Source of the DNA: Pristiophorus japonicus
Lineage: Eukaryota
Direction of reading: 5' to 3'
Assembly: GCF_044704955.1 (NCBI RefSeq)
Contig: NC_091999.1
Span: 51,150,001-51,214,000 of the forward strand
DNA length: 64,000 nt
A program made the translations under genes and the position numbers. Positions 11,961-64,000 of this stretch are shown piece after piece. The first letter of the stretch is position 1, and the number at the start of each line of letters is the position of its first letter. The notes under the pieces are model-generated. The model ran no database searches and had not been told where the DNA came from. It saw nothing but the letters and a program-made list of their open reading frames with translations.

Positions 11961-12947
11961 CCGCGCAAGAGGAATGATATATTAGCCAGAATGACACGAA
12001 GCATTTATTTTTTGGTATCAGCGAATAGCACACGGAAGAGAAACGTGTTGATTTGGTGAATTGCAAACATTCCTTTAAAGCCATAAAGTTCACAGTGTAT
12101 ATTTATACATTGAAGAAGTGCCAGTCAGTGCCTGGTAATCAGTTGGCCCAGTACATCACCATGTTTTCTCTAACACTTACCCTTCACGTTCCTATTTCAC
12201 AGTCTCAGTGTATATATTCTTATCATTTCATTGGAACAGAGGCAGCTGGAATGGATAGGGGAGGTTCATCACATGTAAGACTGAAGAGTTGTTCTTCAAA
12301 TTACAACATGCAGAGATTGCGATGTAAAAGTGCGTGTTGTTTACATTAATCAACGATTAATGCAACAGAACAACATTACGAAAAAGCTGCGACCGAGGTG
12401 TAGTCCCACTTTTGTGTGTAGACACTTTACAGTTTTATTTTTCGGAGATTTCTAGCGAAATATTGTACAAACATTCTTTCAATTTCGCTAGAACTAACGA
12501 TGGAGAATATATTTTCTTATATTTACTGTATCAGTAATGGAGCAATTATTTCTTGCCCGTTTAGGCTAATCCAAGTGAAAACAACGAGGGACATTTTGTA
12601 CATCCAAGTGAGCTGGCAGTGTTATGTTTAAGATTCGGGCCTGTAGCTCTCTCATTAATGGATACAGCTACTTGTGTTTAAAGTGGAGACAGCAAATTTG
12701 GTAAAAAGGAGAACGAAAGAGGGATAATAAAATTATAGCTTATCTCTGCTAGAATCAAAGTAACAGTATTCCATTTTCGGACACAACTCACTCGCTGCAG
12801 TTTCAATCCTTTTCCCTTTCCTGATGCAATGTCCAATCTCAGCTGTACGGACAAAGGACTGCGGCTGAGCGGTGGGCACTAGGAGGATAGAACAACGAAG
12901 CTGTTCTCATCTGGGAGCAGTAATGAACTTGTCTGTCCAACCTATCG

Positions 12948-14178
12948 GGAGGCTCCAAAGGGCGTTGCAGCCAGGGTTGACCAAAAGAGTGTGACATGCA
13001 GGAAGGTACCAAAGATCTTTGCAACCAGGGAGGTTCCAAAGCGCTTTACACCCAGGGAGGTTCCAAAGGGCTTTACACCCAGAGACGTTCCAAAGTGCTT
13101 TACACCTAGAAAGGTTCCAAAGGGCTTTACACCCAGGGAGGTTCAATGGAGCTTTACAGCGAGGGAGGTTCCAAAGTGCTTTACACCCAGAGATGTTCCA
13201 AAGATATTTACACCCAGGGAGTTTCCAAAGATATTTACACACAGGGAGGTTCCAAAGTGTTTCATACCCAGTGAGGTTCCAAAGTGCTTCACACCCAGGG
13301 AGTTTCCAAAGAGATGTATCCCCAGGGAGGGATGTATCCCCAGGGAGGATCGAAAGTGTTTTACACGCAGGGAGCTTCCAAAGAGATTTATACCCAGGGA
13401 GTTTCCAAAGATATTTACACCCAGCAAGGTTCCAAAGTGTTTTACACCCGGAGGTTCCAAAGTGTTTCACAGCCAGGCAAGTTCCAAAGTGTTTTACACC
13501 CAGGGTGGGTCCAAAGTGTTTTCATGCAGAGAGGGTCCAAAGTGTTTTACAACCAGGGAGGTTCCAAAGAACATTGCACCCAGGGAGGTTCCAAAGCGCA
13601 TTACACCCAGGGAGGTTCCAAAGGGCATTACACCCAGGGAGGTTCCAAAGAGCATTACACCCAGGGAGGTTCCAAAGTGTTTTACACCCAGGGAGGTTCC
13701 AAAGTGTTTTACACGCAGGGAGGTTCCAAAGTGTTTTACTCCCAGGGAGGTTCCAAAGTGTTTTACACCTAGGGAGGTTCCAAAGTGTTTTACACCCAGG
13801 GAGGTTCCAAAGAGCATTACACCCGGGATGGGGGGTGGTTCCAAAGTGTTTGACACCCACAGGGAGGTTTCAAAATGTTTTACACCCAAGGAGGTTCGAA
13901 GGCGATTTACACCCAGGGAGGTTCCCTGGAGCTTTACACCCAGTGAGGTTCCAAAGTGTTTTACACCCAGGGAGGTTCCAAATTGTTTTACACCCAGGGA
14001 GTTTCCAAATAGTTTTTCTCCCAGGGAGGTTCCAAAGTATTTCAGACCCAGGGAGGATCCAAAGTTTTTTACACCCAGGAAGGTTCCAAAGTGTTTTACT
14101 CCCAGGGAGGATCCAAGGCGATGTACTCCCAAGAAGGTTCCATGGAGCCTCACACCCAGGGAGGTTCCAAGGTGCTTT
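12948..14178. repeat. 27-bp minisatellite (cccagggaggttccaaagtgttttaca), about 45 copies
   Basis: Visible tandem periodicity; translates as a 9-aa repeat on both strands. Confidence 0.95.
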
Positions 14179-14179
14179 A

Positions 14180-14545
14180 TATTGAAGTGTAGTCATTGTT
14201 GTAATGCAGGGAAACGTGGCAGCGGATTTGCACTCAGCAAAGTTCCACCTACCGAGAAATAAATACAGGCGCAGATAATCATTTTTGGTGATATTTGTTG
14301 AGCGATAAGCATTGGTCAGGGCATCGGCAGAACATTTACTCACTTCTTGAATATAATACACTCAGATCCTTGGCATCCACCTGATAGGGAAGACGGAACC
14401 TCGGTTTAAAGTCTCACTTGAAAGACAGCACCATCTGACAAAGAAGCATTCCATCAGTACTGCACGGGCGGGTCAACCTGTAATGGGACTTGAACCCACA
14501 TTCTTCTAACTGAGGTGCAAGAGGGCTACCACGGCTGAGTGCATC
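14180..14545 (-). mobile_element. SINE, same family
   Basis: Collinear with 28760-29130, including the gggttcaagtccc B-box. Confidence 0.75.
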
Positions 14546-14780: not shown

Positions 14781-15682
14781 CTAGTTTCGTTGTAGAAGTA
14801 ATTTAACAACTAGATTCAATGGATATTTCAGCGCGTTCTTTAACTGCTGTCTGAAGTTACTCTGAGTCACTGTATAAATAAACATGTTAGTGCAGCAGCT
14901 TAGGAGCTGAAGCATGTTTCCACTTTCCTGCAGAACAAATTTGGGGTCATTGAAATAATTATTGTTTTCAATTCGGACATAGAGAAAATTGATAACATAC
15001 GTCAACCACAACAGGATGAAACTTCCCGAGATGGTGAAGAGTAAAATTATGGACTTTCGCCGGCTCTCCATCTCTGGATCACTCTGACTCTCTCCATTGT
15101 TTTGGGCCCGGAGTCTCCTGCGGGCCCTACTGGCCCCTAGAATGTATCTGACGGTCACAGCATTGAGCAGTAACATCAGGAGGAACGGTGCACACGGGGT
15201 TAGAATACGGTCCAGCCAGTCAAACGCTGTCCAAGCGGGTGAAAAATAAAAAGTAAGTTTTATGTTGCAGTACCAGGCCACATTATTAATAGTAAACAAT
15301 GGCTCATACGTGAAGTAGAAAGGGATGTTTTTTAAACAACTCAGGGCACAGACCGCTCCTATCACCACAGCCGCCGTTGTCTCGGTGCAGTATTTTGTTT
15401 TCAGCTTCTGGCAACAAATGGCCACAAATCGATCAAAGGTGAACGCGACCGTTAACCAGACAGAACTGTCTCTTGATGAATAAATGAGCACAGTGCTGAT
15501 GCTGCACGCTGGTGTGGTGGACAGAATGCTATTCCGGAAATAGATACCACCAATTCTATTCAATATCACAGCGGTGATAATCACCAGGAGATCGGTCACC
15601 GCCATGAACACCAGGTACCGAGTGATACACCTGGAGAGACCGCACCTTCCTCGGGACAGGATCACAATCGCCGCGATGTTCG
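14781..15682 (-). CDS. GPR139-like: GPR139-like class A GPCR, exon 2 (TM1 end to TM7 and stop); spliced product 323 aa
   Basis: Open frame with TM2 MAVTDLL, TM3 SVWLTVAFTFDRFVAIC, ECL2 WYC, TM6 FILLWL and TM7 SCCTNMFIY. Acceptor ttttgcag|CG-AAC at 15682 joins exon 1 in phase 1 to give GVP-A-N. Confidence 0.9.
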
Positions 15683-16544
15683 CTGCAAAAAGGAGCAAAA
15701 TGGAAATTACACATCAGACTACCATCATAAGAACATAAGCACATATGAAATAGGAGCAGGAGTAGGCCATTTGCCTCCAACCGCACCCCCCTCCCCCGGG
15801 CCTGCTCCGCCATTTAATAAGATCATGGCTGATTTGATCATGGATCAGCTCCACTTCCTGCCCACCCCCCCGAAACCTTCTTTCACTTATCGCTCAAAAA
15901 TCTGTTTATCTCCGCCTTAATTATCTTCAGTGACCCAGCCTCCATAGCCATTCAAAATCTTAGTTTGACTGGACATGGTTTCTGAGTTCATTACCTGATC
16001 AGTTGATGGAATCCAATCAATTTGCCAGATCAGCAGAGCTTCACTAAATACGGAACAATATGGAATCGCAGGGAAAGCGTTTTGCTCGATAGACGTGAAG
16101 CTATAATCGCCTGAACTCGGCACAAAAAGAGAAGGAGAGCGAAACTGACCATAATAAAGAACAGAAATAAACTAATAGTTAATGAATAATTTATCCCAAC
16201 ATTAAATAGGACAAGCTAAACATAATGTCACCTTGAAAATTGATGGTAGAAAGAGTGCGATCGACTGCTATTTACACCTCAGGAGAATCGTAAAATCCCC
16301 ATATGGAATGACTCCAAATTACGACTGTTGCTATCTGGTTAATGGAGTAGCTATTCTGCTAATGGGCGGTGAAAAAAGGCAATGAGATCATTGACCAGCA
16401 AACTGCACCTTTGTGATATTGGTTGAGGGACAAATGTTGGCCAGGGCACAACTCCCAGCACTCGGTCCAGTTGTTCCTTGAACATTAGACAGTGTCATGG
16501 TATGCAGTATCACTGTAAAGGCGGCATTGCAGAGAACCTGTCAG

Positions 16545-20499: not shown

Positions 20500-23135
20500 C
20501 TAACCTGTCCAGTCCCGTCAGAATCTTGTAAGTTTAGATGAGATCCCTTCTCATCCTTCTAAACTGCAATGTATAAAGGCCCAGTTGATCCAGTCTCTCC
20601 TCATATGTCAGTCCCTCCATGCCGGGAATCAGTCTGGTGAACCTTCGCTGTACTCCCTCAATAGCAAGAACGTCCTTCCTCAGGTTAGGAGACGAAAACT
20701 GAAAACAATATTCCAGGTGAGGCCTCACCAAGGCCCCGTACAACTGTAGTAAGACCTCCCTGCTCCAATACAAATCCCCTCGCTATGAAGGCCAACGTAC
20801 CATTTACCTTCTTCACTGCCTGCTGCACCTGCATGCCAACTTTCAACGACTGATGAACCATGACACCAAGGTCTCAGTGCACCTCCCCCTTTCCTAATCT
20901 TCCACCATTCAGATAATATTCTGCCTTCGTGTTTTTGACCACAGATTGGATAACCTCACATTCATCCACATTATACTGCATCTGCCATGCATTTGCTCAT
21001 TCACCTAACCTGTCCAATCACCCTGAAGCCTTTTAGCGTCCTCCTCACAGCTCACACCGTTACGCAGTTTAGTGTCATCTGAAAACTTGGAGATATTACT
21101 CTCAATTACTTCATCTAAATCACAAATGTATATTCTAAAGAGCTGGGGTCCGAGTCATGAGCCCTGCGGCATCCCACAAATCACTGCCTGCAACTCTGAA
21201 AAGGACCCGTTTATCCCGACTCTCTGCTTCCTGTCTGCCAACCAGTTCTCTACCCACGTCAGTACCTGACCCCCAATACCATATGCTTTGATGCTGCACA
21301 CCAATTTCTTGGGTGGGACCTGGTCAAAAGCCTTTTGAAAGTCCAAATACACTACATCCACTGGTTCTCCCTTGTCGACTTTACTAGTTACATCATCAAA
21401 AATTCCAGAAGATTTGTCAAGCATGATTTCCCTTTCATAAATGCATGCTGACTTGGACCGATCCTGTCACTGCTTTTCAAATGCGCTGCTATTTCATCTT
21501 TAATTATTGATTCCAACATTTTGCACACTACTGATCTCAGGCTGACTGGTCTATAATTACCCGTTTTCTCTCTCCCTCATTTTTTAAAAAGTAGTGTTAC
21601 ATTTGCTGCCCTCCAGTCCATAGGAACTGATCCAGCTTCGATAGAATGTTGGAAAATGATCGCCAATGCATCCATTATTTCTATGGCCACTTCCTTAAGT
21701 ATTCTGGGATGCAGACTATCAGGCCCCGGGGATTTATCGGCCTTCAATCCCATCAATTTCCCAAACACAATTTCCCACTTTATAAGGATATCCTTCAGTT
21801 CCTCCTTCTCACCAGGCCCTCGGTCCCCTAATATTTCTGGAAGGTTACTTGTGTCTTCCTTCGGGAGAACAGAACCAATGTATTTGTTTAACTGGTCTGC
21901 CATTTCTTTGTTCCCCATTGTAAATTCACGTGAATCTGAATAAAAGGGACCGACGTTTGTTTTCACTAATCTTTTCCTCTTCACATATTTATACAAGCTT
22001 TTGCAGTCAGTTTTTATGTTCCCAGCAAGGTTCCACTCATACTCTATTTTCCCCCTCCTAAGTAAACCCTTTGTCCTCCTCTGCCGTGTTAGAAAATTCT
22101 CCAAGTCCTCAGGTTTGCTGCTTTTTCTGGCCAATTTATATGCCTCTTCCTTGGACTTAACACTATTCTGAATTTCCCTTGTTAGCTAAGGTTGAGCCAC
22201 CTTCCCCATTTTATTTTTACTCCAGACAGGGATGTACAATTGTTGAAGTTCATCCATGTGATCTTTAAATGTTTGCCACTGCCTATCCGTCAACCTTTTA
22301 TGTATCACTCGCCAGTCTATTCTAGCAAATTCATGTCTCATACTATCAAAGTTACCTTTCCCCAAGTTCAGGACCCTAGTCGCTGAATTAACTGTGTCAC
22401 TCTCCATCTTCATAAAGAATTCCATCATATTATGGTCACTCTTCCCCAAGGGGCGTAGCACAACAAGTTTGTTAATCAGTCCTTTCTCAGTACACATCAC
22501 CCAAACTAGGAAAGCCAGCAAACTAGTTGGTTCCTCGACATATTGCTCTGGACAACCATTCCTAATACACTGCAGGAAATCCTCCTCCACCGTATTGCTA
22601 CCAGTTTGGTTAGCCCAATCAATATGTAGATTAAAGTCGCTCATGATAACTGCTGTACCTTTATTGCATGCATCCCTAATTTCTTGTTTGATGCTGTTCC
22701 CATCCTCATTACTCGTGTTCGTTGGTCTGTACACAACTCCCACTAGCGTTTACTGCCCTTTGCTATTCCGTAGCTCCATCCATACAGATTCCGCATCATC
22801 CAAGCCAATGTCCTTCCTTATTATTGCATTAATTTCCTCTTTAACCAGCAACGGCATCCCACCTCCTTTTCCTTTCTGTCTATTGCTCCTAAATGTTGAA
22901 TATCCCTGGATGTTGAGTTCCCATACTTGGTCACCCTGGAGACATGTCTCTGTGATGCCAATTACATCAGATCCGTTAACTGCTATCTGCGCAGTTAATT
23001 CGTCCACCTTATTCCGAATACTAGTCGCATTGAGGCACAGAGCCTTCAGGCTTGACTTTTTAACACCCTTTGCCCGTTTAGAATGTTGCTGTAATGTGGC
23101 CCCTTTTGCCCTCCACTTTTACTTTTCTTCTTTCT
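20500..23135 (-). mobile_element. CR1 ORF2 (endonuclease + RT), decayed
   Basis: GITETCLQ, VVYRP, SPGPDSLHP, VDVVYLDFQKAFD, RPHLEYC. Confidence 0.92.
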
Positions 23136-23880: not shown

Positions 23881-24034
23881 TTTCACCTTGCATATTAGTT
23901 ACAGTCATCTGAACAAACAATTCGCTTTCACGTTGATGTTTCCTGAAATAGAATATGTTTTCAAGTGTAATGCAGACATCTATTGGAAAATGTCATGCAG
24001 TTCCCATGATGGAACGGAGCCGTGAACACTACAT

Positions 24035-25510
24035 ACATAGAAACATATAAACAAATAAAATAGGTGCAGGAGTAGGCCAATCGGCCCTTCGAGTCTGTAC
24101 CGCCATTCAGTGAGTTCATGGCTGAATATGCAACTTTAGTGCCCCATTCCTGCTTTGTAGCCATACCCCATGATCCCCCTAGTAGTAAGGACAAATCTAA
24201 CTCCTTTTTGAATATATTTAGTGAATTGCCCTCACCAACTTTCTGTGGTCGAGAATTCCACAGGTTCACCACTCTCTGGGTGAATACGTTTCTCCTCATC
24301 TCGGTCCTAAATGGCTTACCCTTTATCCTTAGACTATGACCCCTGGTTCTGGACTTCCCCAACATTGGGAACATTTTTCCTGCATCTAACCTGTCTAAAC
24401 CCATCAACATTTTAAATGTTTCCATGAGATCCCCTCTCATTCTTCTGAACTCCAGTGAATACAAGCCCAGTTGATCCAGTCTTTCTTGATATGTCAGTCC
24501 CGCCATCAGGGAATCAATCTGGTGAACCTTCGCTGCACTCCCTCAATAGCAAGAATGTCCTTCCTCAAATTAGGAGGCCAAAACTGTACACAATACTCGA
24601 GGTGTGGCCTCACCAAGGCATTGTACAAATGTAGTAACACCGCACTGCCCCTGTACTCAAATCCCCTCGCTATGAAGGCCAACATGCCATTTGCTTTCTT
24701 AACCGCCTGCTGTACCTGCATGCCAACCTTCAATGACTGATGTACCATGACATAATCACGTAGAGTTACACAGGGTCTGCAGCACAGAAGGAAATGTGTC
24801 TTCTGTGCAGTTTAGTCCAACTTGTCTATGCGGGAATCATGCTCCAAACGAATCTCATCCTACCCCTCTTCATCGAACCCTAATGGCATATCCTTCTATT
24901 CCTTTATTGGTTATAATCTAGTTTCGCCTTCAATGCATCTATACTATTCATCTCAACCACTCCCTGTGTAGCGAGTTCGACACACTCGCTAGTCTGTGGG
25001 TAAAGACATTTTTCCTGAATTCCCCATTGGATTCATAAGTGAATATATTATATTTATGCCCCCGAGTTTTAGTCCTTCCCCACAAGTGGAAACAACCTCC
25101 CTACATCTATCCTATCAAAGCTTTCATAATCTTAAAGACCTCTACCAGGTCACTTCTCAGCCTTCTATTTACTGCAGAAATAAGCCAGAGCCTGTTCAGC
25201 CTTTCCTTATGAATAGATCCTCCCAGTTCTGGTATCATCCTTCTCATCGCATGAATCATTTTTGCAATTTCGCCTGTGCCTAAATAACCGTTATAATATG
25301 TCGATCAGAACTGTGCACAGTGATCCACGTGTGGTCTAACCACGGTTTGATACAGGTTTAAAATAACTTATCTGCTTGTCAATATATCTCTCCAGAAATG
25401 AACACTAGTGCATTTTCATGGAATTATTAACCTGTGCGTCGACTTTTAATGATCTGTGTATCTGTACCCCCAGATCTTTTTGCCCCACTGCCCAATTTAG
25501 ACTCTTATTC
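24035..25510 (-). mobile_element. Two CR1 3' fragments upstream of the GPCR promoter
   Basis: acatagaaacat tail; RTRGHSLR; RPHLEYCVQFW. Confidence 0.85.
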
Positions 25511-25674: not shown

Positions 25675-27505
25675 TATAGATATGGGAAGAGAAAAAGGTT
25701 AGTGAAGACTAATGTAGGTCGCTTCCAGTCAGAATCAGGTGAATTCATAATGGGGAACAAGGAAATAGCAGACCAATTGAACAACTTATTTGGTTCTGTC
25801 TTCACTAAGGAAGACACGAATAACCACTCGAAAATACTAGGAGACCGAGGGTCTAAGCGTGAAGGGTGAACTGAGGGAAATCCTTAATAGTCAGGAAATG
25901 TTGTTAGAGAAATTGAAGGGACTGAAGGCCGATAATCCCCAGGGCCTGATAGTCTGCATCCCAGAGTACTTAAGGAAGTGGTGCTGGAAATAGTAGTTGC
26001 ATTGGTGTTCATTATCCAACATTCCATGGACTCTGGTTCAGTTCCTATCGATTGGAAGGTAGCTAACGTAACCACACTTTTTAAAAAAGGAGGGAGAGAG
26101 AAAACAGGGAATTGTAGACCAGTTAGCCTGACATCGGTGGTGGGGAAAATGCTGGAATCAACTATTAAAGATGAAATAGCAGGGCATTTGGAAAGCAGTG
26201 ACAGGATCGGTCCAAATCAGCGTGGATTTATGAAAGGGAAATCATGCTTGACAAATCTTCTGGAGTTTTATGAGTATGTAACTAATAGAGTGGATAAGGG
26301 AGAACCAGTGGATGTGGTGCATTTGGCCTTTCAAAAGGCTTGTAAACAACGTCCCACACAAGAGATTGGTGTGCAAAATTGAGGCCCAGGGAATTGGGGG
26401 TAATGTATTGACATGGATAGAGAACTGGTTGCCAGACAGGAAGCAAAGAGTGGGAAGAAACGAATCCTTTTTAGAATGGCAGGCAGTGAGTAATGGGGTG
26501 CCGTAGTGTTCAGTGCTGGCACCCCAGCTATTTACAATATACATTAATGATTTAGACGAAGGAATTGAATGTAATATCTCCAAGTTTGCAGATGAAACTA
26601 AGCAGGGTGGCAGTGCGAGCTGCGAGGCGGATGCTAGGAAGCTGCAGGGTGATTAGGACATGTTAGGTGAATGGGCACATGCATGGCAGATGCGGTATAA
26701 TGTGGATAAATATGAGGTTAACCACTTTGGTGGTAAAAACAAGACGGCAGATTATTATCTGAATGGCGACAGATTACTAAAAGGGGAAGTGCAACGGGAC
26801 CTGGGTGTCATGGTACATCAGCCATTGCAGGTAGGCATGCAGGTACAGCAGGCAGTAAAGAAAGCAAATGGCATGCTGGCCTTCTTAGCGAGGCGATTTG
26901 ATTATAGGAGCAGGGAAATCTTACTGCAGTTGTGCAGGGCCTTGGTGAGACCACGCCTTAAGTATTGTGTGCAGTTTTGGTCTCCTAATCTGAGGAAGGA
27001 CATTCTTGCTATTGAGGGAGTGCAGCGAAGGTTCACCAGATTGATTCCAGGGATTGCAGGACTGACATATGAAGAAAGGCTGGATCGACTCGGCTTATAT
27101 TCACTGGAAATTAGAAGAGTAAGAGGGGATCTCTTAGAAACATATACAATTCTGATAGGATTGGACATGTTAGATGCAGGAAGAATGTTCCCGACGTTGG
27201 GGAAGACCAGAACCAGGGGTCACAGTCTAAGCACCGAGATCAAGAGAATATTCTTCACCCAGAGAATTTTGAACCTGTGGAATTCTCTACCACAGAAAGT
27301 TATTCAGGCCAGTTCGTTAGATATATTCAAAATGGAGTTAGATGTGGCCCTTACGTCTAAAGGGATCAAGGGGTATGGAGAGAAAGCAGGAATGGGTTAC
27401 TGAAGTTGCATGATCAGCCGTGATTATATTGAATGGTGCTGCAGACTCAAAGGGCCGAATGGCCTAATCCTGCACCTACTTTCTATGTTTCTATGTTTCT
27501 ATGTT
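25675..27505 (+). mobile_element. CR1 ORF2 RT to 3' end with (tttctatg)n tail
   Basis: RPVSLTSVVGK, GKSCLTNLLEF, FAD motif. Confidence 0.92.
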
Positions 27506-42724: not shown

Positions 42725-43602
42725 GTAGGTATTTCATAAGATTATAATAGTTATTTTGTTTATTAATGAAGCTTTTGTTTATTTTCTAATGTTTATTGTG
42801 TCTACTGTTGACGGCGGAGTCAAATTGATGCGCGGTTCCTCGGGATTTGCCCACCCGTCAGTGAGTGTCCATAGACTATTCCAAATAGCTGCAACATGGC
42901 TTGTTACTGTAAACATGGCAGGTCCGCAGAGGTGCATCTTCTCGCGGGACCGAGACCCTGGCTGCTTAACGCACTTATTCCCGGACACTGAGACCATTGT
43001 TTCCCTGGGATAAAATGTGTGAGGCGGTGTCTGCAGTCGGGAAGCTCACACCTGGTCTGTACACGGAACTGGTCTGCGAACCCGAATGTCCTTCAGCAAG
43101 CCAATTATATTTGTAATTCCAATATTCATTAATATGTTTATAAATTTCAATAATTCTAACCCAACGTATCAGTTCTTATTGGTGAAACACAGGCTATTAC
43201 TCGCTGCCCTAAACACCAAGGGCATCTGTTCTGTGTTATTGATTAAGATGAATATGTATAATGTCTATAATTTCAACTTGAACTATTAACTGACAGAGTG
43301 ATTTCACCATTCGCTAATCGCAGCCATTAACCCAACTGGCACCAGTATGAGCCTGGAGATGGAACTATGATCTCAACCTGCTGGCCCATAAAATCAGTCG
43401 CAGCCTGCGATCAGCTCAATGAGGTGCTAAAGATTTGGACTTTCCCATTCTGTTTCACATTGGCAGTGCAGTTAATATCTGAATCAGCGGGGAGATGTCT
43501 GAATGCGTGTGTCATTGTATATCTGAGTTTGTGTGTTTGCTCTAAGGTACAAAAACACTTTATATCGAAATGTTCTGTTGATAACCTCCTCTTTGTTTGC
43601 AG

Positions 43603-43910
43603 CATCCAGCCGGCAGGGTGAACTTTCCCAAAGGCCTTCAGCAGCAGCAGCGAGTGAAGGAGGTACGGCGGTGTTGCCCTGTAACTACTCCACCACATAC
43701 ACAGCCGCTAACCTATTCTGGTATGTACAGTACTTGGGAAGAGGCCTTCAGTACATGCTCGCCAGACACACTGCTGGGAATGAAGAGAACGCACCAGCCT
43801 TTATAAAGCAGTTTTCTGCCGTACAGGACAGAATGAACAAAAACATCCCTTTGAACATCACACCCACCCAGCTGTCTGACTCCGCCGTGTATTACTGCGC
43901 AGCTATGTAG
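43603..43910 (+). CDS. TRAV: T-cell receptor alpha/delta-type V segment (V1)
   Basis: tttgcag acceptor; EGGTAVLPCNYS, LFWYVQ, LSDSAVYYCAA (C23/W41/C104 present); followed directly by a 23-RSS. Confidence 0.88.
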
Positions 43911-43949
43911 CACGGCGTTACATGAACTCTTGACACTGCTACAAAAACT
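43911..43949 (+). other. 23-RSS of V1
   Basis: CACGGCG + 23 nt + ACAAAAACT. Confidence 0.9.
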
Positions 43950-44856
43950 GCCAGTTCCAGGTCTTGTCTTCGAGAATGGTGCAATTGCTCTATCATTCGA
44001 CTTTGTCAGTTAATAGTTCAATTAAAATAATAGATTTCACATATATTCATCTTGATTAATAATACAGAACAGTTGCCTCATGGTATTTAGGGCAGCGACC
44101 AATAGTCTGTGTTTCTTCACTAATGGGTTAGAGTTATTTCAATTTTTAAACGTATACATTATAATTAGAGTTACAAATATAATTGACCAGCTCAAGAATA
44201 TTCGGGTGCTCATACCGAATCCCTGTACAGACCAAGTGTGAGCTTCCCTGCTGCAGAGTCCACCTAGCTCATTTTCTCCCGGGGAAAAGGCATGCTCAAA
44301 TATTCATGATCTCCAGAAGTAACCGTGATGGACACCAGAATATCCATCCAAACGAACAGTTCCCAGAGCCACCACAAATGGCGCTCCCACAGTTAAGGGC
44401 AATTTAAAGCCTGCTGTACATAAGGAACTTCGGGCAAGGACTTTGGAGTGACTTGGTAACATTCGTGTGCATAGTTACGTGACAAACGTATGGATTAAAG
44501 TGAATGTGGCGCCACTCTTCACTGACTGAGAGAACAGAGGGACAAGAAAGGGAATTACTTCTGATATATACCAAGCGCACGGAGGCACTTCTGCGCTTAT
44601 TTTTTGCAAATTCAAATAGCAACTGCAGCATTTTGCATTAGTTGTTCAGTTTTAGCCTCAGCAAAGGTAGAATATTAGTAACTTTGTTGCGGTTCTTCTT
44701 TTCAAACAATGAATTCGATCGTATTGTAATCACTGTTGAATGAATGTTCCCTTACTGTTAGATTATTACTAATTCTGATGCATTACTCCTTACTAAATCT
44801 AGTAAGGCTTGTCCTCCTGTTGGTTGCATAACATATTGCTCCACAAAAATATCTTG

Positions 44857-47800
44857 AAACATAGAAACATGGAAAATAGATGCAGGAGTAGGCCATTCGG
44901 CCCTTCTAGCCTGCACCGCCATTCAATGAGTTCGTGGCTGAACATTCACCTCAGCACCCCTTGTCTGCTTTCTCTCCATACCCCTTGCTCCCTTTAGCCG
45001 TAAGGGCCTGATCTAACTCCCTCTTGAATATAGCCAATGAACTGGCATCAACAACTCTCTGTGGTAGAGAATTCCACGGGTTAACAACTCGCTGTTGAAC
45101 AAGTTTCTCCTCATCTCAGTACTAAATGGCTTACCCCTTATCCTTTGACTGTGTCCCCTGTTTCTGGACCTCCCCTAAATCGGGAACATTCTTCTTGCAT
45201 CTAACCTGCCGAGTCCCGTCAGAATGTTGTAAGTTTCAGTGAGATCCCCTCTCATCCTTCTAAACTCCAGTGAATACAACTCCCATTACAGTTTTAGTCA
45301 CTTGTATTCCTAATTTCTAATCACAGAGCGCTGATTGCGTTCCCTCGCCTACATTCTCTCTTAGAAAACGTTGTAATAGTATCTGTAATCATAAAGGCTA
45401 ATCAAGGGTCAGGTCCTAACTTGTGAATCCAATGAAATAAAGCAGATCGCTGCGATACCTGCTCCTGGTTTCCTGAGGGAAGTGCAGATTGGCACGTCTT
45501 CTTCTTTGAACCTAAGAGCCGCTGAAGTTTGCCGCGCTGAAGTAGGCCGCCTTCCACCTCAATACTGAAAGATGCCATTCGGCCCACTATGTTTGTGCCA
45601 GGCCTTTGCTACAGCAATCCAAATCTTGTCAAACTAATCCACTGTCTCCATGGTTCTGTATCCTCTGCTAAAAATGCAACCAGCTTACAGATTTCGAAAA
45701 GATAACTACTCCTTGTGGCAGAGGGCTAAAAACCTTTAATAACCAGCTGCATAAATGAAGCTATTTAATTACTATATGCATCACTAAATCTCTTTATATT
45801 GAATTACATAGAATAAACAGCACAGCAATAGACCATTCGGCCCAACGAGTCCAAGTTAGCTTGTCTGCTCCACTCGAGCCTCCCCCCCGTCCTTTCTCAT
45901 CCAACTCGATCAGCTTAATCCACTTTTCCCATCTTCCTCATATGCTTATCTAGCTTCCTCTTTAATAACTATCTGCATCAGTACATCTATTCAATAGCTA
46001 ATTGCCTGAATAATTCTTCTCGATAATATTCTCTGTGTTTAGTGGTCTATACTCTTAGGAGTTTAGAAGAATGAGAGAGCATCTTATTGAAATATACAAG
46101 ACACTGAGGGGAACTGACAGAGTAGGTACTTAAAGGTAATTTCCACTGGCTGGAGAATCGAGAACTCGGGGGCATAGTATAAGGAGGACAAAAAAAAACT
46201 GCAAAAGGACATAGACAGGCTAAGTCAGTGGGCAACAATTTTGCAGATGGAGAATGATGTTGGAAAGAGTGAGGTTATGCACTGTGGCAGAAAAAAATCG
46301 AATAGCAAGTTATTACTTACATGGAGAAAAATTGAAAAATGCTGCAGTGCAGCGGGACTTGGGGGTCCTGGTGAACGAATCACAAAAGGCTAGAATGCAG
46401 GTACAGCAAGTGATCAGAAAGGCTAATGGGGTTTTGGCCTTTATTGCAAAGCGAACGGAGTATAAAAGCAGAGAAATCTTGCTACAGTTATACAGCGTAT
46501 TGATGAGGCCACACCTAGAATACTGCGTACAATTTTGGTTTACATATTTAAGAAAGGATATACTTGCTTTGGAGGCAGTTAGAGAAGGTTCACTAGGTCG
46601 ATTCCCGAGATGAGGGGGTTGACTTATGAGGAAACGTTGAGTAGGTTGCACCTCTACTCATTGGAATTCAGAAGAATGAGAGGTGATCTTATCGAAACGT
46701 ATAAAATTATGAGGGGGCTTGAAAAGATAGATGCAGAGAGGATATTTCCACTAGACTACAACAAGGGGGAATAATCTCAGAATAAGGGGCCGCCCATTTA
46801 AAACTGAGATGAGGAGGATTTTCTTCTCTCAGAGCGTTGTAAATCTGTGGAATTCGCTGCCTCAGTGAGCTGTGGAAGCTGAGTCATTGAATAAATTTAA
46901 GACAGAGATAGAAAGTTTCTTAACCGATAAGGAAACATGGAGTTATGGGGAGCGGACAGGGAAGTGGACCTGAATCCTTGATCGGATTCGCGATGATCTT
47001 ATTAAATGGTGGAGCAGTCTCGAGGGGCCGTATGGCCTACTCCTGCTCCTAGTTGTTACGTTCTCATGTTGATTCCAGGGATAGGGGGACTGTCTTATGA
47101 GGAGGGATTGAGTAAACTAGGCCTGTATTGTTAAGAGTTTAGAAGAATGAGAGGTGATTTAATTCAAACATGCTAAATTCTTACAGGGCTTGACAGGATA
47201 GATACCACGTGAATGTTTCCCCTGGCTGGGGAGTCTCGAACCTGGGGTCACAATGTCAGAATAAGGGGTCGGTCATTTAGGACTGAGATAATGAGAAATT
47301 TCTTTACTCATAAGGTGATGAATCTTTGAATTTCTCTACTGCAGAGGGGTGAGGGGGCTCAGTCGTTGTTTATATTCAAAAAAGAGATCGCTAGATTTTT
47401 GGATATTAACGGAAACAAGGGATATGGGGACAGTGCAGAAAAGTTGAGTTGAGTTAGAAAATCAGCCATAATCTTATTGAAAGAGCAGCAGGCTGAAGGG
47501 GCCTAATTGCTTCCTCCTGCTATTATTTCTTATAGTCTCAGCATAAGGGTCGGCTGTTTAAGACTGAGATGAGGTGGAATTTTTTCACTCAGAGTTTGTG
47601 TATATTTGGAATTCCCTACTTCAAAGCTATGTGGAAGCTGAGAATATTCAAGGATGTGATCGGTAGAATTTTGACACTAGGGGAATGAAGGTATATGGGG
47701 ATTGGGCAGGAATGTAGAGTTGTGGTCGAAGATCAGCCCTGATATTATTGAATGGCCACATGGTCTACTCATATTCCTACTTATTCGATCCTTCTGTTAT
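44857..47800. mobile_element. Cluster of CR1 3' fragments (minus 44857-45280; plus 46040-47800 with three stacked tails)
   Basis: Repeated agaagaatgagaggtgat...ctactcctgctcct units. Confidence 0.8.
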
Positions 47801-52480: not shown

Positions 52481-53886
52481 TCTCTCCTTTATTGAATTGA
52501 ATTCTTCCCCTTCCTACAAATATTATCTTGGCTTTCTGTTCCATCCCCCAGTAAGTTCCTTTAATCATACAAGTTATTAAACATTGACACTTTCCTTCAA
52601 CACCCTTAACATTAAGCCTTGTCCCCTAGTCCCATAAACCTGCGACACCCTGAATCCAAATTCTCCACAGTGGCTAAAATCTTAAATATCTTCATCAAAT
52701 CTTCCCTCCAATAGCTTTCACTATTTGCGCTAGAATAATCATCTTAATATCGAAAAATAGATTTAATTATCTGTGTTGCAGCAAAAGCAGCTCGAAATTT
52801 TCACATTTTTCATCCGTACTCTGCCCGTTCCTGGTTAGACCTTAATGAATCTATATATCTATATTCAATATTCTCTCCATAATTAGGTCATCAAACATGA
52901 GCTGAGTGTTTCAAATGTGGCGTCACTAGTGTTGTGCAGTTTCTGGGTCATTTATTATACATCATCATCATCATCACCATCCTAGAATTGCTCTATGCTC
53001 CATTCAGTCCCATTTCTGTCTCGAGTCAGTCGGAGATCAGAAGTTTCAGATGGAACCGGAAGTGCACCTGTATCGACATGCCATAGCTCACACCACAACT
53101 GTCACTGCAGGTTATTGCAGCAGCAAACTCGACCTCAAGAAATGGTTTCAACATAACCTCAACGGTTAAAAACCTGTTAAAGTTGGACGGTTGCTCAGAA
53201 AATATTTATCACGTTGAAAGGTGCGTTTAATTCATTGTATAAATAATTTTGCAGGTAAATACCAAAAAAAAAACGTCCAGGTGAACAGGTGGCAAAATAA
53301 AGATATAACAGAATTATCTAGAGGGGAGATAACGTTATTTAAATATGAGTTGTTTATTTTTCGTGAAAGTCACCCAGGACCCTAAAAATCCTGGTGCATC
53401 GCAGGAACCTAACACCAAGGAAAGCCACAATATTTATTGAAATATACCCTCTAAGTTACTCCTTTCTGCTACACTCAACTATACACCGTTTCTTACAAAG
53501 TAATTTAGTGAACTTTAATGTTTTATTTGTAAATAAACTAATTTGAAATTTCATATTTTGGAGCAGTGTTAGCGATTTCAGCAAGTTCATACTCACACAT
53601 GGAGAACGAATCACGGCAATGTAAATTGATGCCTTAGAACCATTCACTCTTTATTCTGAATAAAATCCCTGTCCTGTTTGGCCTTTGTGTGGTTGCGCTT
53701 TGTTCAGTTGGAATATTCCTTTTGTCATTGGCTGGCGACTGCCGGCCGTGCTTTCCCCAGAGATTCGCGGCACAAGTGGCGGGACACTGGAGCGCGACAA
53801 CCGACCCTCCAAAAGGGTTGTTTCAGCTGCAAATTCGTGCCAGTTTCCAGAGATTACAAATTTAATAAACGCACGGCGAAGCAGCA

Positions 53887-54288
53887 ATGCGGTTAATCGC
53901 TATCTGTGCTGTGTTTGGAGCATTACTTACAGGTAATTATTCTGAGACACGGTTTGGGGTCAAATGTGAATTTAAAAATGGTTTACTTTTTGACGTTGGT
54001 TTGCATTTAATGCAGGTCTGAGCCAGGAAATCTCTGTCAGACAGCAGCTTCCAACAGTGAGTTGGACAGAAGGAATCATTATAATCTATTTCACGACCAT
54101 GAGTGCCAATACGCCGGCAGTGAACCCGAGTTTATTGTTGTCAAGCTTTCAGGCGGTTGCCAAATAAAAGCGGATTTTGCTCAAAGCCGTTTCGCCATTG
54201 TGCTGGACACTGCCAAAGCCATCTTCATTTTAACCACCTTCAAACTGCGGCCTGCTGAAGCCGCCACCTATTACTGCGCGCTGAGTCT
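53887..54288 (+). pseudogene. TRAV: TCR alpha/delta-type V pseudogene (V2): leader 53887-53932, V exon 54016-54288
   Basis: Leader MRLIAICAVFGALLT, 83-nt gt-ag intron. A frameshifting deletion after SWTEG removes C23 and W41; the 3' half reads EPEFIV...KADFAQSRF...AATYYCAL. Confidence 0.85.
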
Positions 54289-54327
54289 CAGAATGGTGGG
54301 AACCAGTCAGACCCACGTACAAAAACT
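54289..54327 (+). other. Defective 23-RSS of V2
   Basis: CAGAATG (CAC broken) + 23 nt + ACAAAAACT. Confidence 0.8.
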
Positions 54328-56149
54328 AGCTGGATGTGTGTGCCCTGGAGATAATCCTTATTTTGGGCTGTGCAGACTGGCAGTGAGAGGAAACAGTGCT
54401 CGGCACACGGTGTGATCTGAGTCTCACAGGGAAAACATATTACAGCGACTCAGAAACATTCTGACTGCAAATCGTCCCAAAACCCCACAAAGTAACCATA
54501 GGTGACCTGGAGATAGGATCGGGTTCGATTTCCTTTTCTGTTTCCGATGTAAACATGGAATTAATATCTCTGTGCGTTATTTCTAGCGAAATGGAAACAG
54601 ATGTGTTAATGCAAGTAAACAGTTTATTTGATATTAATTTCCTTATATTCATTCTTGGCTTTTAACTGTTACACGAGTTATGGTGAGCCAAGTGCAGTGA
54701 ACCATTTAATTTCAAAGCGATTTCCGGCAGAGACAGCCTTTGCTAATAAGGAAGTTCATCAGAGACAAAGTCAGGCTTTCTTTGTTAGATGGCTGCCTTT
54801 AGCACCATCAATCTCTCAGCAGTGAGAGACGCGACATCTCCATAGACATGTTTTCACGGATCGTGAAGCTCCAACTCCGGATTCTGACTCCACCGAGGAC
54901 AGCTGTGTATGAAATGTGGAACGTCCCTATTGGGGCTTCTGTTCTCTGTAATTGCCTCCAGTTACATGAGTTGATTAGCATTTCAGTCAAGGTGAAAGCT
55001 TGGGGAGTGATTCTTGTTAAAACTGAAGTTTATGCCGCTAACTGACGGAGGTGAGACTATGGAACATGTGATACGCAGCAGGTCGGAAATAAAGGATTAA
55101 AAAGGAGTAAAACAGGATAGGTACATAGAATGTGACGAGGCCGGATCAGCCGTTCCCCTGAAGCTCGGGACCAGTAACGGATAAATCTCCTCTCACCTTA
55201 TTACCTTAAATGTTCTCTTAATTATATGTGTATTTTTTAATAATAATAGTTATTTTTGTATACCTAATTCACATTATTGCAAATAAATGCACCTAAGCCC
55301 TTTTTACTTGTGGAAAAAGTTATAAGCTTACAAGTGACACGATCCATTCCCTATCGCTAACAGGAAATATCTCCCACGTCTGTTATGTCTCACAAAAGGC
55401 AACCAGAGTGAACATCTCCCACACTTCATCATTTCATTTCTATTTTAAGCAATGAAAAAGAGTGTGAGGCAATTCAGGTCCAGAAGGCCTCCCACTGATA
55501 GCAGAGCCCGGGATGTCCTTACATTTCAAATAATGGGAGGAAATCTGGGGAGGGGGGCTCATTACAGGCGTGTAATTTCCCCCCGCCACCGCCACAGCCC
55601 GACATATTTTCATCTCTGCTCGCCACCCAGACAATGATTTTTGTCCAGTTGGCGATTGCTAAAATATAACTTCAAATCTCAGCGCCCTCGTGAACCAGAG
55701 AATAATTCAACTCTTCCAGTTCTTAAATATTTGGTTGCAGTAAGGAAGAGAATGGGTTCACATGTCGAGTTAAACATTGTTTAACATCTTAAACTGAAAG
55801 ATAATCGAATTTCAAAGAACATAGAAGATTCAGTCCATTGAATTTCACTGATCCATGAGTTCTCCTCCCCACTATAGAAACCAGCTTCAGAAGCAGCTCT
55901 TTAATTTTCTGTCTTTGCTACCTCCCCCCAGGAATGTTGTCACAAAATATCAATGTTTAAGGAAAGCTCCCTCCAATTGTGGTTTAAACTAATTCCTCGG
56001 ATGCACGAAATGTCGTGAATAAAAATCACTCCACGAGTGAGCATGGACCCACAGAACCGTCCGCAATTCAGCACAATCTCACACCGAATCCCCTCCCTTT
56101 CATGAACACGGAAATGCGGAAAATAATCGAAAACAATGTACTTGCTTTT

Positions 56150-59114: not shown

Positions 59115-60030
59115 TTTGTAGATGACATTAAATTACGAGGGCGAGTAAGTAGTGCAGATGTAAGGAGGACGTTGATAGATTAAATCAGTGGGAAGAACTC
59201 GAGCATATTGAAGCTAATGTGGGCAAATAAGAAGACATCCACTCTAGACCAACAAATGATGAATCGGAGTATTTTCTAAATAGTGTTAAGCTAGTTGCTG
59301 TAGAGGAGCAAAGTGATTTAGGAGTCCAAATACACAAATCATTAAAAACAACTAGACATGTACAAAGAGCAATCAAAGGGGCCAATGTAATCGAGGTCTT
59401 TATCGCGAGGGAGCTGGAATACAAAGGAAGGAAAGTCCCGCTTCTGTTGTATAAACTCTGGTTGTCTGCTTCTGGAGTAACTGCATTCAGTTCTGGGCAC
59501 CGCACCTCAGGAAAGATATACTGGCCTCGGAGCGGGTACAGCGCAGAATCACCAGAATGATACCCTCAAAGCTTCCTTGATAAAGTGCAACATCCACTCC
59601 AACACCTGGGAATACCTGGCCCAAAACCATCCGAAGTGAAGGAAGACCATCCGGGATAGCACTGAGCACCTCGTGTCTCGTCACCGAGAGCATGCAGAAA
59701 TCAACGCAGGCTGCGCAAGGAGCATGTGGCAAACCAGACTCCCAACCCACACTTTCCTTCAACCACTGTCTGTCCCACCTGTGACAGAGAATGTAATTCC
59801 CATATTGAACTGTAGAGTCCCCTGCGAACTCACTTTTAGAGTGGAAGAAAGTCTTCCTCAATTTCGAGGGACTGCCTGTGATGATGATGAATGGGTCGCA
59901 GAATATTAAATTATAAGGACAGGTTACAGAAACGTTTGTTGGATGCTAGTGAGTAAAAACAAATGCGATGTTTTAAATGTTAAGTGTATTCGATCAGTTA
60001 GATATGCAGAAACTATTTCCTCTGATTGGG
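59115..60030 (+). mobile_element. Old CR1 fragment interrupted by an RTE-like 3' end (about 59565-59890, (gat)n tail)
   Basis: CR1 QFWAPHLRKDI; insert has CPTCDR and ends gatgatgatg. Confidence 0.65.
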
Positions 60031-60110
60031 AACTGCTATGTTCCTGACATACCTTTTGGAACTGACTGGTTTTGTCTGCTTTTCTCCATTAATAAGATTG
60101 GTTGTTATAG

Positions 60111-60381
60111 GTAAAGAGGAAATTGTACGAACATTTCCGTCACAGACTCCCAGTGAAGGGAAAACCATATCGATTAACTGTCACACAACCATTTCCTTCT
60201 CTGCGATATTCTGGTGGGTCCAGCATCCAATCCAAAGCACAAAGATGGTGATGTTGGCATCGGAAAATGCTGAACATAAAGGACGATTTACAGCCGTCAG
60301 TCAAAGTTCGGAGAAGCGCAGCTCCCTGACTATCGTGGACTTACATCTGACAGACACAGCGACCTCCTTCTGTGTCGTTCA
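60111..60381 (+). CDS. TRAV: TCR alpha-type V segment (V3), open frame
   Basis: EGKTISINC, IFWWVQ, GRFTA, SSLTI, DTATSFCVV; phase-1 acceptor ttatag|GT (5' boundary approximate). Confidence 0.8.
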
Positions 60382-60420
60382 CACAGTGTGATAATGAGTG
60401 ACAGAGTGTGCACAAAAACC
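60382..60420 (+). other. Consensus 23-RSS of V3
   Basis: CACAGTG + 23 nt + ACAAAAACC. Confidence 0.95.
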
Positions 60421-60779
60421 CGGGGCTGCTTTTAGGATGGAATGTTTAGAAAGAAGATTGAATGGGATAGATTTTCACAACGTGCAATTGTATAAACACG
60501 GCGATAGCAAATCGGCAGCCCGTTTTACATTTGTGCTGATTTGTAGTTCCATTAAAAAATCGCTATCAGCGGTTTACTCTTTAGCACAATCACAGAATGT
60601 ACACAAGTGCGCGTTTATTTCAAGAATATAGCACGCTCCAAAGCGCTTTCAAATTGTTGAATTGCAATCTGAAGAACAATTACGGTTCCCTGCATGCAAG
60701 CACAGCCGATAATTTGCGGCAAGCAAGATCACAACAATAAGAACCGAGATAAATATTAGGTTCGCTTATTTTAAGGGTG

Positions 60780-62340
60780 CAGGTTCAATGGAGTAAATTC
60801 AAAACCAATCGACGGATACAATATTTCAGTGAGTGAGTGGTCAATCTGTGGAGCAGGCTCCCTAGGGAAACGATGGAAGCAGTTCGTGTTGATTCATTCA
60901 AATGCGAATTAGAGAGAATTATTTCACAGAATAAAATGTAGGACACATTATGCGAGTACTTTGAGACAAGACGTCTGGTGAATGTAGTATGCTTGGGAGG
61001 AGCAGGTGACTTTGGTCGATTGGTTGTTAAGTTATCCACCACTGAAATGTTCTTCGCCTAATGTCTATTGTAGAATCATTGATAGAGATTGATTGCTATG
61101 ATTAATCAACAACTGAATTATCGTAGTATACTTTGAGTACCAGGATGGTAGAAGGCCTATTAAATGCACCTTGGTCTTTTTCCATCTAGCGATTCATATA
61201 TTCCTATGTTCCAATGTCCATTAAGCCATAAAGCAGCCTCTTCAATATAAGAACATAAAAACATAGTAAATAGGAGCAGCAGTAGGTCATACGGCCCCTT
61301 CGAGCCTGCTCTGCCAATTAATACGATCATGGCTGAACTAATCATGGACTCAGGTCCACTTCGCTGCCCGCACCCCATAACCTCTTATTCCCTTATCGTT
61401 TAAGAAACAGTCGATTTATGTGTTAAATGTATTCAATGTCCCAGCTTCCACAGCTCTCTGAGGCAGTGAATTCCAGAGATTTACAACTCTCTAAGAGAAG
61501 AAATTTCTCCTCGTCTCAATTATAAATGGGCGGCCCCTTATTCTAATATGATGTCCTCTTGTTCTAATCTCCCCCATCAGTGGAAACATCCTCTCTGCTT
61601 CCAACTTGTCAAGCCCATTCATAACTTTATACGTTTCGATAAGATCACCTCTCACTCTTCTGAATTTCTATGAGTAGAGACCCAACCTATCAAACTTTTC
61701 TCATAAGTCAACCCCCTTATCTCCGGAATCAAACATGTGAACCTTCTCCGAACCACCGACAAAGCAATGTTATCCGTTCGTAAATATGGAAACCAAAATT
61801 ACACGCAGTATTCCCGCCGCGGCCTCACCAATACCCTGTACAGCTGTAGCAAGACTTCCCTGCTTTAAGGCTGCAGGTTGACGGGAGTACATTCAAGCCA
61901 ATACACGGAAACAATATTTCAGTGAGTGAGTGGTCAATCTGTGGGAGAAGCTGCCTATGGAAACAAAGGAAGCATTGGCCTTCCTGATCACTTGCTGTAT
62001 TTCATGCACAAGTACCCCTAGGTCCTGCTGTACTGCAGCACTTTGCAAACTTTCTCCATTTGAATAATAACTTGCTGTTTGATAGTTTTTCTGCCAAAGT
62101 GCATGACCTCACACTTTCCAACATTATACTCCATCTCCCAACTTTTTGCCCACTCACTAAGCCTGTCTATGTCCCTTTGTAGATTTTTTGTGTCCACCTC
62201 ACGCCTTCCTTTACCTCCCATCGTTGTATCGTCACCAAACCTGGCAATGTTACACTCAGTCCCTTCTTCCAAGTCGTTAATTTAGATTGTAAATAGTTGG
62301 GGTCCCAGCACTGATCCATGTGGCACCTGACTAGTTGCTG
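60780..62340. mobile_element. CR1 fragments (+ 60780-61240; - 61250-62340)
   Basis: FGDDT, KCEVMHFG, cataaaaacatag tail. Confidence 0.8.
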
Positions 62341-63288
62341 CATTTATTATACTAGCAGAATATATTACAAACCAAGATTTGAAAGAGACAGTGGAAATAT
62401 TAAAAAGGCGATTATGTACATTTCTAAAGAAAGAAGAGCTACATGAGATATGACGCAAATACAGAAGGTTGAGTTATCATTTCTGCTTTTGAAATATTTT
62501 ATTTTGCAAAATTTAGGTAAATTACAGGACAGTTCAACTATATTATTTTCTGCTGTCAGAAATGAACGTGGCCCATTTTCTATGAAGTGATATTGGGATA
62601 GGCTTTTATTTTACTCTTTGCCAGTTATACATTGCCAGAGTCCATTCAGTTCCGATATGTGTTTCTATCTAGATTCCATATATTAATACAACGACTAGAA
62701 CTTGAATGACAATGCACATGGAAAACTCTTCAGGCTCTTTGTTCTCTCAAAACAACGTTATAATGTCACAGGTTATTTTGGTAGTAATGCACCAGATCGG
62801 TTCTGACCGAACCTTTGGTGTAAAAAAATTCCTATCAGTTAAGAAGTCCGCATCAGTATTTTAATTGCTGTCCTGAACAAAAGGCAAATTCTTCAACTGG
62901 CCATTTATTTTTGTCTTAACTAATCACTGAGGTAATAATGTTCTGCTGGTCATTATTAGGGATCATGTTAACGTAACTGAAAGATGTATATTCGTGGTGT
63001 TTTTTTTGCGAAATTCTGAGAGCACTCTTAAAAATGCATTATGCTTTGGCGAAATCTAACGGAAATCGTAAACCTTGCTGGTAATAGCAACGATATCCTT
63101 CACACATAATAACCAGATGAAACATCTGTGGGTATTTCATGGAAAGCTTAGGCAATGCTTCTGCCCCCACCAATCCATCAAAAGGATTGGAATAGTCCCC
63201 GCGCTCTTTAAACACAACTACCCTTAGTCAGTACACACTAAGCTTACCTAGAGAGCTACTGTTTAAACTAGGAGTCATGTGCGTCCGA

Positions 63289-63730
63289 ATGACGCTTTGC
63301 GGTGACTCCATCCTGTTGACGCAATTATAATGTGAGTATTCAATGCAGTAAATGTTGAACAAGAATATAATATACTTGGATTGTAGCACTCTCTTGCTAT
63401 TGGTCTGTCAGTAATATTGGACATTGAAGACTCTTTAAATAGACTTGCTGGACTTGTTTCCCTTTCAGTGGTCTTCAGTCACAGAATAATTATAGTGAGT
63501 AGGAAGGATTGCCAGTTATCACCAGCACTTGTTTTTTTCACAATAGCTATATATTGGGTAAAATGGGCTAGTGTCGTTATCGAGAAGGGGATCACAGTCA
63601 GAAACCATTCCTATTGGAGGACAATTTGTTGAATCAGTCAAAAAAGAAATAAAGTTGTTTGTTTTGGAAGTGAAGGTTCTGAGAATTGAATAAGTTGCCA
63701 CATACCGATGCAAAGCTTAGAGATGGGTAG
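63289..63730 (+). pseudogene. IgNAR/NAR-TCR-type V pseudogene: leader 63289-63331, V exon from 63469
   Basis: Leader MTLCGDSILLTQL* with phase-1 gtgagt; acceptor tttcag. Reconstructed across frameshifts: VFS...EGLPVITSTCFFHNSYILGKMG*CRYREG/SQSETIPIGGQFVESVKKEIKLFVLEVKVLRIE*VATYRCKA*. Confidence 0.75.
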
Positions 63731-63809
63731 GTAAATCTCAATGAGCAGACAGCGGACTCTGCCGTCGAAAATATATCAACACAGCTGTGGCTGGATTGAT
63801 CCATCCCAA

Positions 63810-64000
63810 AAAATAAGAAATAGGAGCAGGAGTAGGTCATACGGCCCCTCGAGCCTGTTCCAGCATTCAATAAGATCATGGTGGTTTTATGACCTCGACT
63901 TCACTTTCCCGCCCTATCCCCAAAACATTTAACTCACTTAGTGCCCAAAAATCTATCTATCTCTGTCTTGAATATACTCCACGGCTGGGTATTCACAGCT
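63810..64000 (-). mobile_element. CR1 3' tail
   Basis: ataagaaataggagcaggagtagg...cccctcgagcctg. Confidence 0.8.

Follow-up and report, generated by a model that had tools for sequence, protein, structure and literature searches.

A decayed V segment, probably of the NAR lineage, among TCR-alpha-like V segments of Pristiophorus japonicus

What kind of antigen-receptor gene left the broken V segment that lies near the end of a 64,000-nucleotide stretch of Pristiophorus japonicus DNA (contig NC_091999.1, forward strand positions 51,150,001 to 51,214,000)? This whole stretch is referred to below as the window, and all positions are counted from its first letter. A first-pass annotation made from the letters alone had proposed that the segment is a dead NAR-type V. 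V domains of the NAR lineage are single domains without a CDR2 that are used in IgNAR and as the outer domain of NAR-TCR delta chains. In cartilaginous fish, the TCR alpha/delta region has been known since 2006 to contain NAR-type V genes, and pseudogenes are an ordinary component of V arrays. Our analysis indicates that the segment is probably a pseudogene of the NAR V lineage, and most likely one of the NAR-TCR kind.

The relic retains the complete architecture of a germline Ig or TCR V segment, with a leader, a GT-AG intron of 137 nt, an L-part 2 of 11 nt and a V exon, all on the plus strand. The leader exon (L-part 1; 63289-63331) is 43 nt long, or 14 codons plus 1 nt, and it begins with an ATG at 63289-63291; another ATG in the same frame lies at 63277. 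The exon reads MTLCGDSILLTQL up to its fourteenth codon, which is a TAA stop (63328-63330). The leader intron (63332-63468) has a GTGAGT donor (T/GTGAGT), a pyrimidine tract and a CAG acceptor, which reads CCCTTTCAG with its last base at 63468. L-part 2 (63469-63479) reads L-V-F-S when joined to the T of 63331, and its 11 nt are the usual length of this part in Ig and TCR V genes.

The V exon (63469-63717) is read in three frames, which cover 63469-63516, 63518-63589 and 63589-63717. In the first of these lies FR1 (63480-63516; HRIIIVSRKDCQ), approximately four residues shorter than the FR1 of IgNAR and containing a cysteine codon in the a-b loop (TGC, 63510-63512). The second frame (63518-63568) opens with ITSTC, which holds the first canonical cysteine codon (TGT, 63530-63532), and continues with the CDR1-like stretch FFHNSYILGKMG. 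It then meets a TAG stop (63569-63571) at or adjoining the place of the conserved Trp, for which the TGT at 63572-63574 is the alternative. At an AGGGG run (63586-63590) the frame moves from second to third. The third frame is open for 34 codons (63589-63690; GSQSETIPIGGQFVESVKKEIKLFVLEVKVLRIE), comprising the part that matches VNAR residues 42-76, and is closed by a TAA (63691-63693) where the VNAR motif E-D-S-G-T-Y-R-C has its Asp. Beyond this stop the V region ends with VATYRCKA (63694-63717), which includes the second canonical cysteine codon (TGC, 63709-63711), and a TAG follows at 63718. The relic keeps both canonical cysteines (TGT 63530 and TGC 63709) as well as the Y-x-C motif in the form Y-R-C.

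Most of this layout had been anticipated. A 14-codon-plus-1 leader containing a stop and followed by xVFS, a 137-nt gt-ag intron, a Cys at 63530 and a VATYRCKA end after a stop had all been claimed from the letters, and each can be read at the positions given above. The claim that the V is broken across three frames also stands, with three forward frames confirmed in the reference.

The spacing of conserved positions gives a first indication of the type of V domain. The two canonical cysteines are 179 nt apart, which corresponds to 60 codons when the frameshift is allowed for, compared to 61 in VNAR and to 64 and 72 in neighboring V segments. Likewise, 17 codons separate the Trp place from G-Q-F in the relic versus 22 and 29 in the neighbors. 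With both spacings this short, the domain lacks the CDR2 (C′-C″) stretch, as does a NAR V.

Finer counts agree with VNAR on one side of the domain and leave one residue ambiguous. From the TAG to the first GGA (63616) there are 47 nt, or 16 codons with one base added, which equals the distance from W36 to G52 in VNAR, where the numbering of G52 is taken from the PDB alignment and that of W36 is the general one for VNAR. The earlier proposal that restoring one base in the G run yields the VNAR spacing from Trp to GG is borne out by this count. Its placement of the TAG at the Trp position holds only in part. Counting back from the GG motif supports it, whereas counting forward from the first Cys puts the TAG 13 codons away and the TGT at 63572 14 codons away, the latter being the distance from Cys22 to Trp36 in VNAR. 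Between the first Cys and the GG motif the relic lacks one residue relative to VNAR, and the HMMER alignment places this gap downstream, after G-S-Q. The Trp place may thus be either TAG or TGT; since each of these codons is a single change away from TGG, the ancestral residue is ambiguous.

Sequence matches to known structures point in the same direction. A 39-residue open piece of the relic was searched against 177,635 PDB chain sequences with a threshold of E≤10, and all 17 distinct matches are shark VNAR domains, the best being wobbegong 1VER (E = 0.0015). The alignment to 1VER covers residues 42-76 (GS..E..I.IGG..VE.V.K..K.F.L....LR.E). No antibody or TCR V domain, of which the PDB set holds thousands, is among the matches of this piece. 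Same-size pieces of two intact conventional V segments nearby served as controls. The piece from the V at 60.1 kb matched only TCR alpha chains (E = 0.13), and that from the V at 43.5 kb had no V domain match in the PDB. Moreover, the T-Y-R-C-K-A past the TAA lies in the exact register of VNAR, with 7 residues from the relic Glu to the Cys just as from E76 to C83.

Judged by these comparisons, the match of the 39-residue piece to VNAR is beyond chance. The first-pass annotation had named the outcome that would speak against its proposal, namely that the peptide groups with ordinary TRAV or TRDV genes or has no V-set match. The PDB search gave the opposite, with matches to VNAR only. Its proposal of a dead NAR-type V is thus supported by these VNAR-only matches and by controls that found TCR alpha chains or no V domain.

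All searches used separate pieces of the relic rather than a joined or spliced read-through model, and several returned nothing. Pfam gave no V-set match for the 39-residue and 21-residue pieces, and a PDB search with the 21-residue piece around the first Cys found nothing. The pieces of the N-terminal half are too short and too decayed to score by themselves, and none gave a significant match; this and the short FR1 weigh against the NAR reading. A phmmer search of a 34-residue piece against 1.8 billion proteins gave no matches, which is expected for so short a query and carries no information on relatives, and a word-index protein search produced no candidates with a 43-residue relic piece or with the V at 60.1 kb. 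Separately, a sub-threshold Pfam match to DUF5698 on an out-of-frame ORF was taken as noise.

Compared to VNAR domains (for example 12A-9, 12Y-1 and 12Y-2 of wobbegong; PDB 1VER, 1VES and 2Z8V), which are its only matches of solved structure, the relic is approximately 45-50% identical over residues 42-76 (IGGxxVExV..K.F.L....LR.E). It has the same ..TYRCKA end and a spacing between cysteines of 60 against 61, and it differs in carrying an extra Cys at position 15.

This extra cysteine, which the first-pass annotation did not mention, bears on the question of which NAR-type gene the relic represents. Around it the relic reads SRKDCQSI, and on the allele with an additional C (see below) it lies seven codons ahead of the first canonical Cys. 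Its place is VNAR position 15, which forms the tip of the a-b turn and is occupied by Gly in the V of IgNAR. The NAR-TcRV of nurse shark and elephant shark has a typical leader and an a-b loop cysteine but does not have the canonical Trp of the WYRK motif, whereas the V-delta that supports it lacks a leader and has a cysteine in CDR1 (PMC1845163). The leader of this description has its counterpart in the relic, whose leader exon is retained but closes with a stop. The relic likewise shares with NAR-TCR V genes the a-b loop cysteine, the short domain without CDR2 and a position among TCR alpha/delta V segments. At the WYRK place it holds TAG or TGT, of ambiguous ancestry. It differs from NAR-TCR V genes in being dead, since it carries three stops and one or two frameshifts and is devoid of a recombination signal sequence (RSS). 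V segments of this kind in the TCR delta locus of cartilaginous fish were reportedly described by Criscitiello et al. in 2006. In recent locus maps, NAR-type V genes of the TCR delta region are drawn (PMC12227049).

The alternative that survives best is that the relic comes from a dead IgNAR minicluster, as its V, instead of being a NAR-TCR V, a reading that we regard as unlikely. Every sequence match is to an IgNAR V, yet no other NAR-type domains have solved structures. The location of the relic is not decisive between the two kinds. Specifically, IgM, IgW and IgNAR clusters show linkage with TCR alpha/delta, TCR-type V exons being interposed between them, and IgNAR clusters share a large antigen-receptor region with TCR alpha/delta (PMC12227049). 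Against an IgNAR origin, the a-b loop Cys at 63510-63512 is a feature described for NAR-TcRV and not for the V of IgNAR (PMC1845163), although the TGC could be a chance product in decaying sequence. Also, the nearest neighbors, which share its strand and lie 3 to 20 kb upstream, are TCR-alpha-like V segments, and neither an Ig C-domain exon nor D or J elements are visible within the approximately 280 bp that can be read downstream. Compared to an IgNAR gene, the relic is a pseudogene in a TCR V array, with no V-D-D-D-J-C minicluster visible. The a-b loop Cys and the locus context, rather than a phylogenetic tree, are the reasons for favoring NAR-TCR over IgNAR.

The DNA downstream of the V exon raises the further question of why the relic lacks the elements required for rearrangement. 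The window ends 283 bp past the V end. Its last 185 bp belong to a repeat, which starts approximately 100 bp beyond the V. Where an RSS is expected (63718-63814, plus strand) there is no pair of heptamer and nonamer and no J-like motif, and the nearest thing to a signal is an isolated CACAGCT at 63780. Indeed, the interval 60400-64000 contains no heptamer/nonamer pair past the perfect RSS at 60382-60420 that belongs to the nearest neighbor. No J-like motif was found in the window, G-x-G-T follows the V end in no frame, and IgNAR-type D, J or C exons are absent from 63718-64000. The interspersed repeat (63815-64000, plus strand) runs to the end of the window and is not part of the gene. A second copy of it lies on the minus strand at about 46830-47052, with the core ..TAGGAGCAGGAGTAGG.CATACGGCCCCTCGAG.. 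and approximately 77% likeness over the aligned part. A search of 62000-64000 with Rfam returned nothing.

One might read these findings as the mark of a NAR-type V that never rearranged or was joined in the germline, so that the missing RSS is original and not a product of decay. The lack of any RSS after the V end, with no trace of a disrupted one, is in keeping with such an origin, as is the fact that the repeat insertion begins only some 100 bp further on. However, a J-like G-x-G-T is present in no frame and therefore the relic is not germline-joined, while the three stops and the frameshifts amount to a general decay that also accounts for a lost RSS. We consider an origin without an RSS very unlikely, and we favor the view that a NAR-TCR V segment lost its signal along with its reading frame.

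The V segments next to the relic are of the conventional kind and share its strand; among single-domain PDB matches, TCR alpha chains are their best. This accords with the earlier description of the relic as lying among conventional TCR V segments. An intact V exon at 43527-43957 (plus strand) matches the Pfam V-set family (E = 2.9e-12) and has TCR-alpha-like PDB matches; it is followed by a weaker 23-bp RSS, in which CACGGCG is the heptamer and ACAAAAACT the nonamer. Like that of the relic, the one leader exon that is plausible for this V (ATG at 43496) stops at a TAA just before the donor. A third conventional V, at 53880-54330 (plus strand), is a pseudogene with a leader-like MRLIAICAVFGALL. 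Its N-terminal half lies in another frame with stops, and the frame is open in its C-terminal half (..SRFAIVLDTAKAIFILTTFKLRPAEAATYYCAL); a ACAAAAACT nonamer is present, together with a degenerate heptamer. The closest neighbor is an open, TCR-alpha-like V exon at 60026-60420 (plus strand; V-set E = 1.2e-7) with a perfect 23-RSS at 60382-60420 (CACAGTG-23-ACAAAAACC). A hydrophobic leader-like stretch (ATG at 60038) continues in frame into this V, with no clear leader intron. Since its CDR1 has no cysteine, this V is unlike the V-delta that supports a NAR V.

Could the relic be simply another member of this conventional array, a TRAV or TRDV pseudogene given a NAR-like appearance by deletion of the C′-C″ region? 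Its position in a conventional V array would fit, and the V at 60.1 kb is itself short, with 64 residues from Cys to Cys. The relic also shares with the TRAV/TRDV-like V segments at 43.5, 54.1 and 60.1 kb their strand and their layout of leader, intron and V exon. But it has no detectable similarity to them in sequence, and tblastn of the relic piece against the V genes of the window gave no match. Its distance from W to G-R/Q-F/Y is 5 to 12 residues shorter than theirs, and the 23-bp RSS is missing. The PDB matches to VNAR, with none to the thousands of TCR and antibody V domains, and the different behavior of the control pieces already contradict this reading, which we consider extremely unlikely.

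Other features of the window are of different kinds. A rhodopsin-family GPCR ORF of 305 codons is present on the minus strand at 14781-15698 (7tm_1, E = 5e-19), with a weak match to olfactory receptors. There is no ATG ahead of its first transmembrane stretch, and it may have its start in an upstream exon or be a truncated gene. A long minisatellite at 12900-14360 yields ORFs in several frames and on both strands, with repeats of approximately nine residues (..PREVPKCFT..). Fragments of retrotransposon ORFs at 21577-22743 (minus strand), 23961-24506 (minus strand) and 26660-27403 (plus strand) comprise an endonuclease/reverse-transcriptase match and LINE-like C-terminal parts.

The relic copy is nonfunctional. 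It has no open frame, being interrupted by a TAA at 63328, a TAG at 63569, a TAA at 63691, a frameshift at 63586-63590 and a 1-bp indel at 63516/63517. This makes three stops with one fixed and one polymorphic frameshift, and no recombination signal. The stretch is present in four DNA sequencing runs, all from one animal. In one of these (X3), contigs span the whole relic, and in them all three stops recur, as does the G-run frameshift. They differ from the reference at three places: position 63301 has G>A, position 63321 has G>C, and one C is added after 63516. The first of these leader variants of the other allele changes Gly to Ser and the second is silent. The extra C places FR1 and the first Cys in one frame, which reads VFSHRIIIVSRKDCQSITSTCFFHNSYILGKMG and then reaches a stop. 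The lesion at 63516/63517 is either still segregating or an error of a low-depth read set, whereas the other four lesions, which are the stops and the G-run frameshift, are solid.

Three differences in 700 bp are compatible with neutral drift. No run recorded as RNA contains the relic stretch, no words of it occur in three further runs of the species, and nothing from two of these (X5 and X6) aligned to it. That assembly errors give a working gene the appearance of a broken one has next to no probability, since the absence of the frameshift at 63516/63517 from the X3 contig, itself perhaps a low-depth read error, is all that speaks for it, while four of the five lesions are equal in both read sets and contradict it, there is no RSS, and the stretch is in no run recorded as RNA.

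If the relic is indeed a NAR-TCR V pseudogene, the course of events can be outlined as follows. The parent gene would have been transcribed from its own leader and its V rearranged to its own D and J, and it would then have been spliced onto a separately rearranged, leaderless supporting V-delta. Its product would have been a delta chain of three domains, with an unpaired antigen-binding outer V atop a gamma/delta receptor. The relic would be a germline V segment that was duplicated and then decayed, losing its RSS and gaining stops and frameshifts. We infer that it originated by birth-and-death duplication inside the V array and now evolves neutrally.

A broader history can also be imagined, for which we see a slim chance. 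NAR cassettes may once have been spread across the whole antigen-receptor region and have left several fossils, the relic among them, and a leader-bearing copy without an RSS might be the remnant of a NAR V transfer between the TCR delta and Ig loci and not an ordinary local duplicate. Such transfer has been proposed (PMC12227049). In the literature since 2019 that mentions NAR-TCR, as searched, we found no catalogue of pseudogene copies.

By itself the relic leaves existing knowledge of NAR-TCR unchanged. For annotation pipelines, it exemplifies a V pseudogene that is missed by ORF-based calling. With regard to the gene family, it suggests that NAR-type V genes in this genome underwent the same birth-and-death turnover as ordinary V segments, and it places NAR-type V copies outside working cassettes. 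A catalogue of such relics, dated by orthologous loci, could help to establish the order in which NAR V genes moved between the TCR delta and Ig loci.
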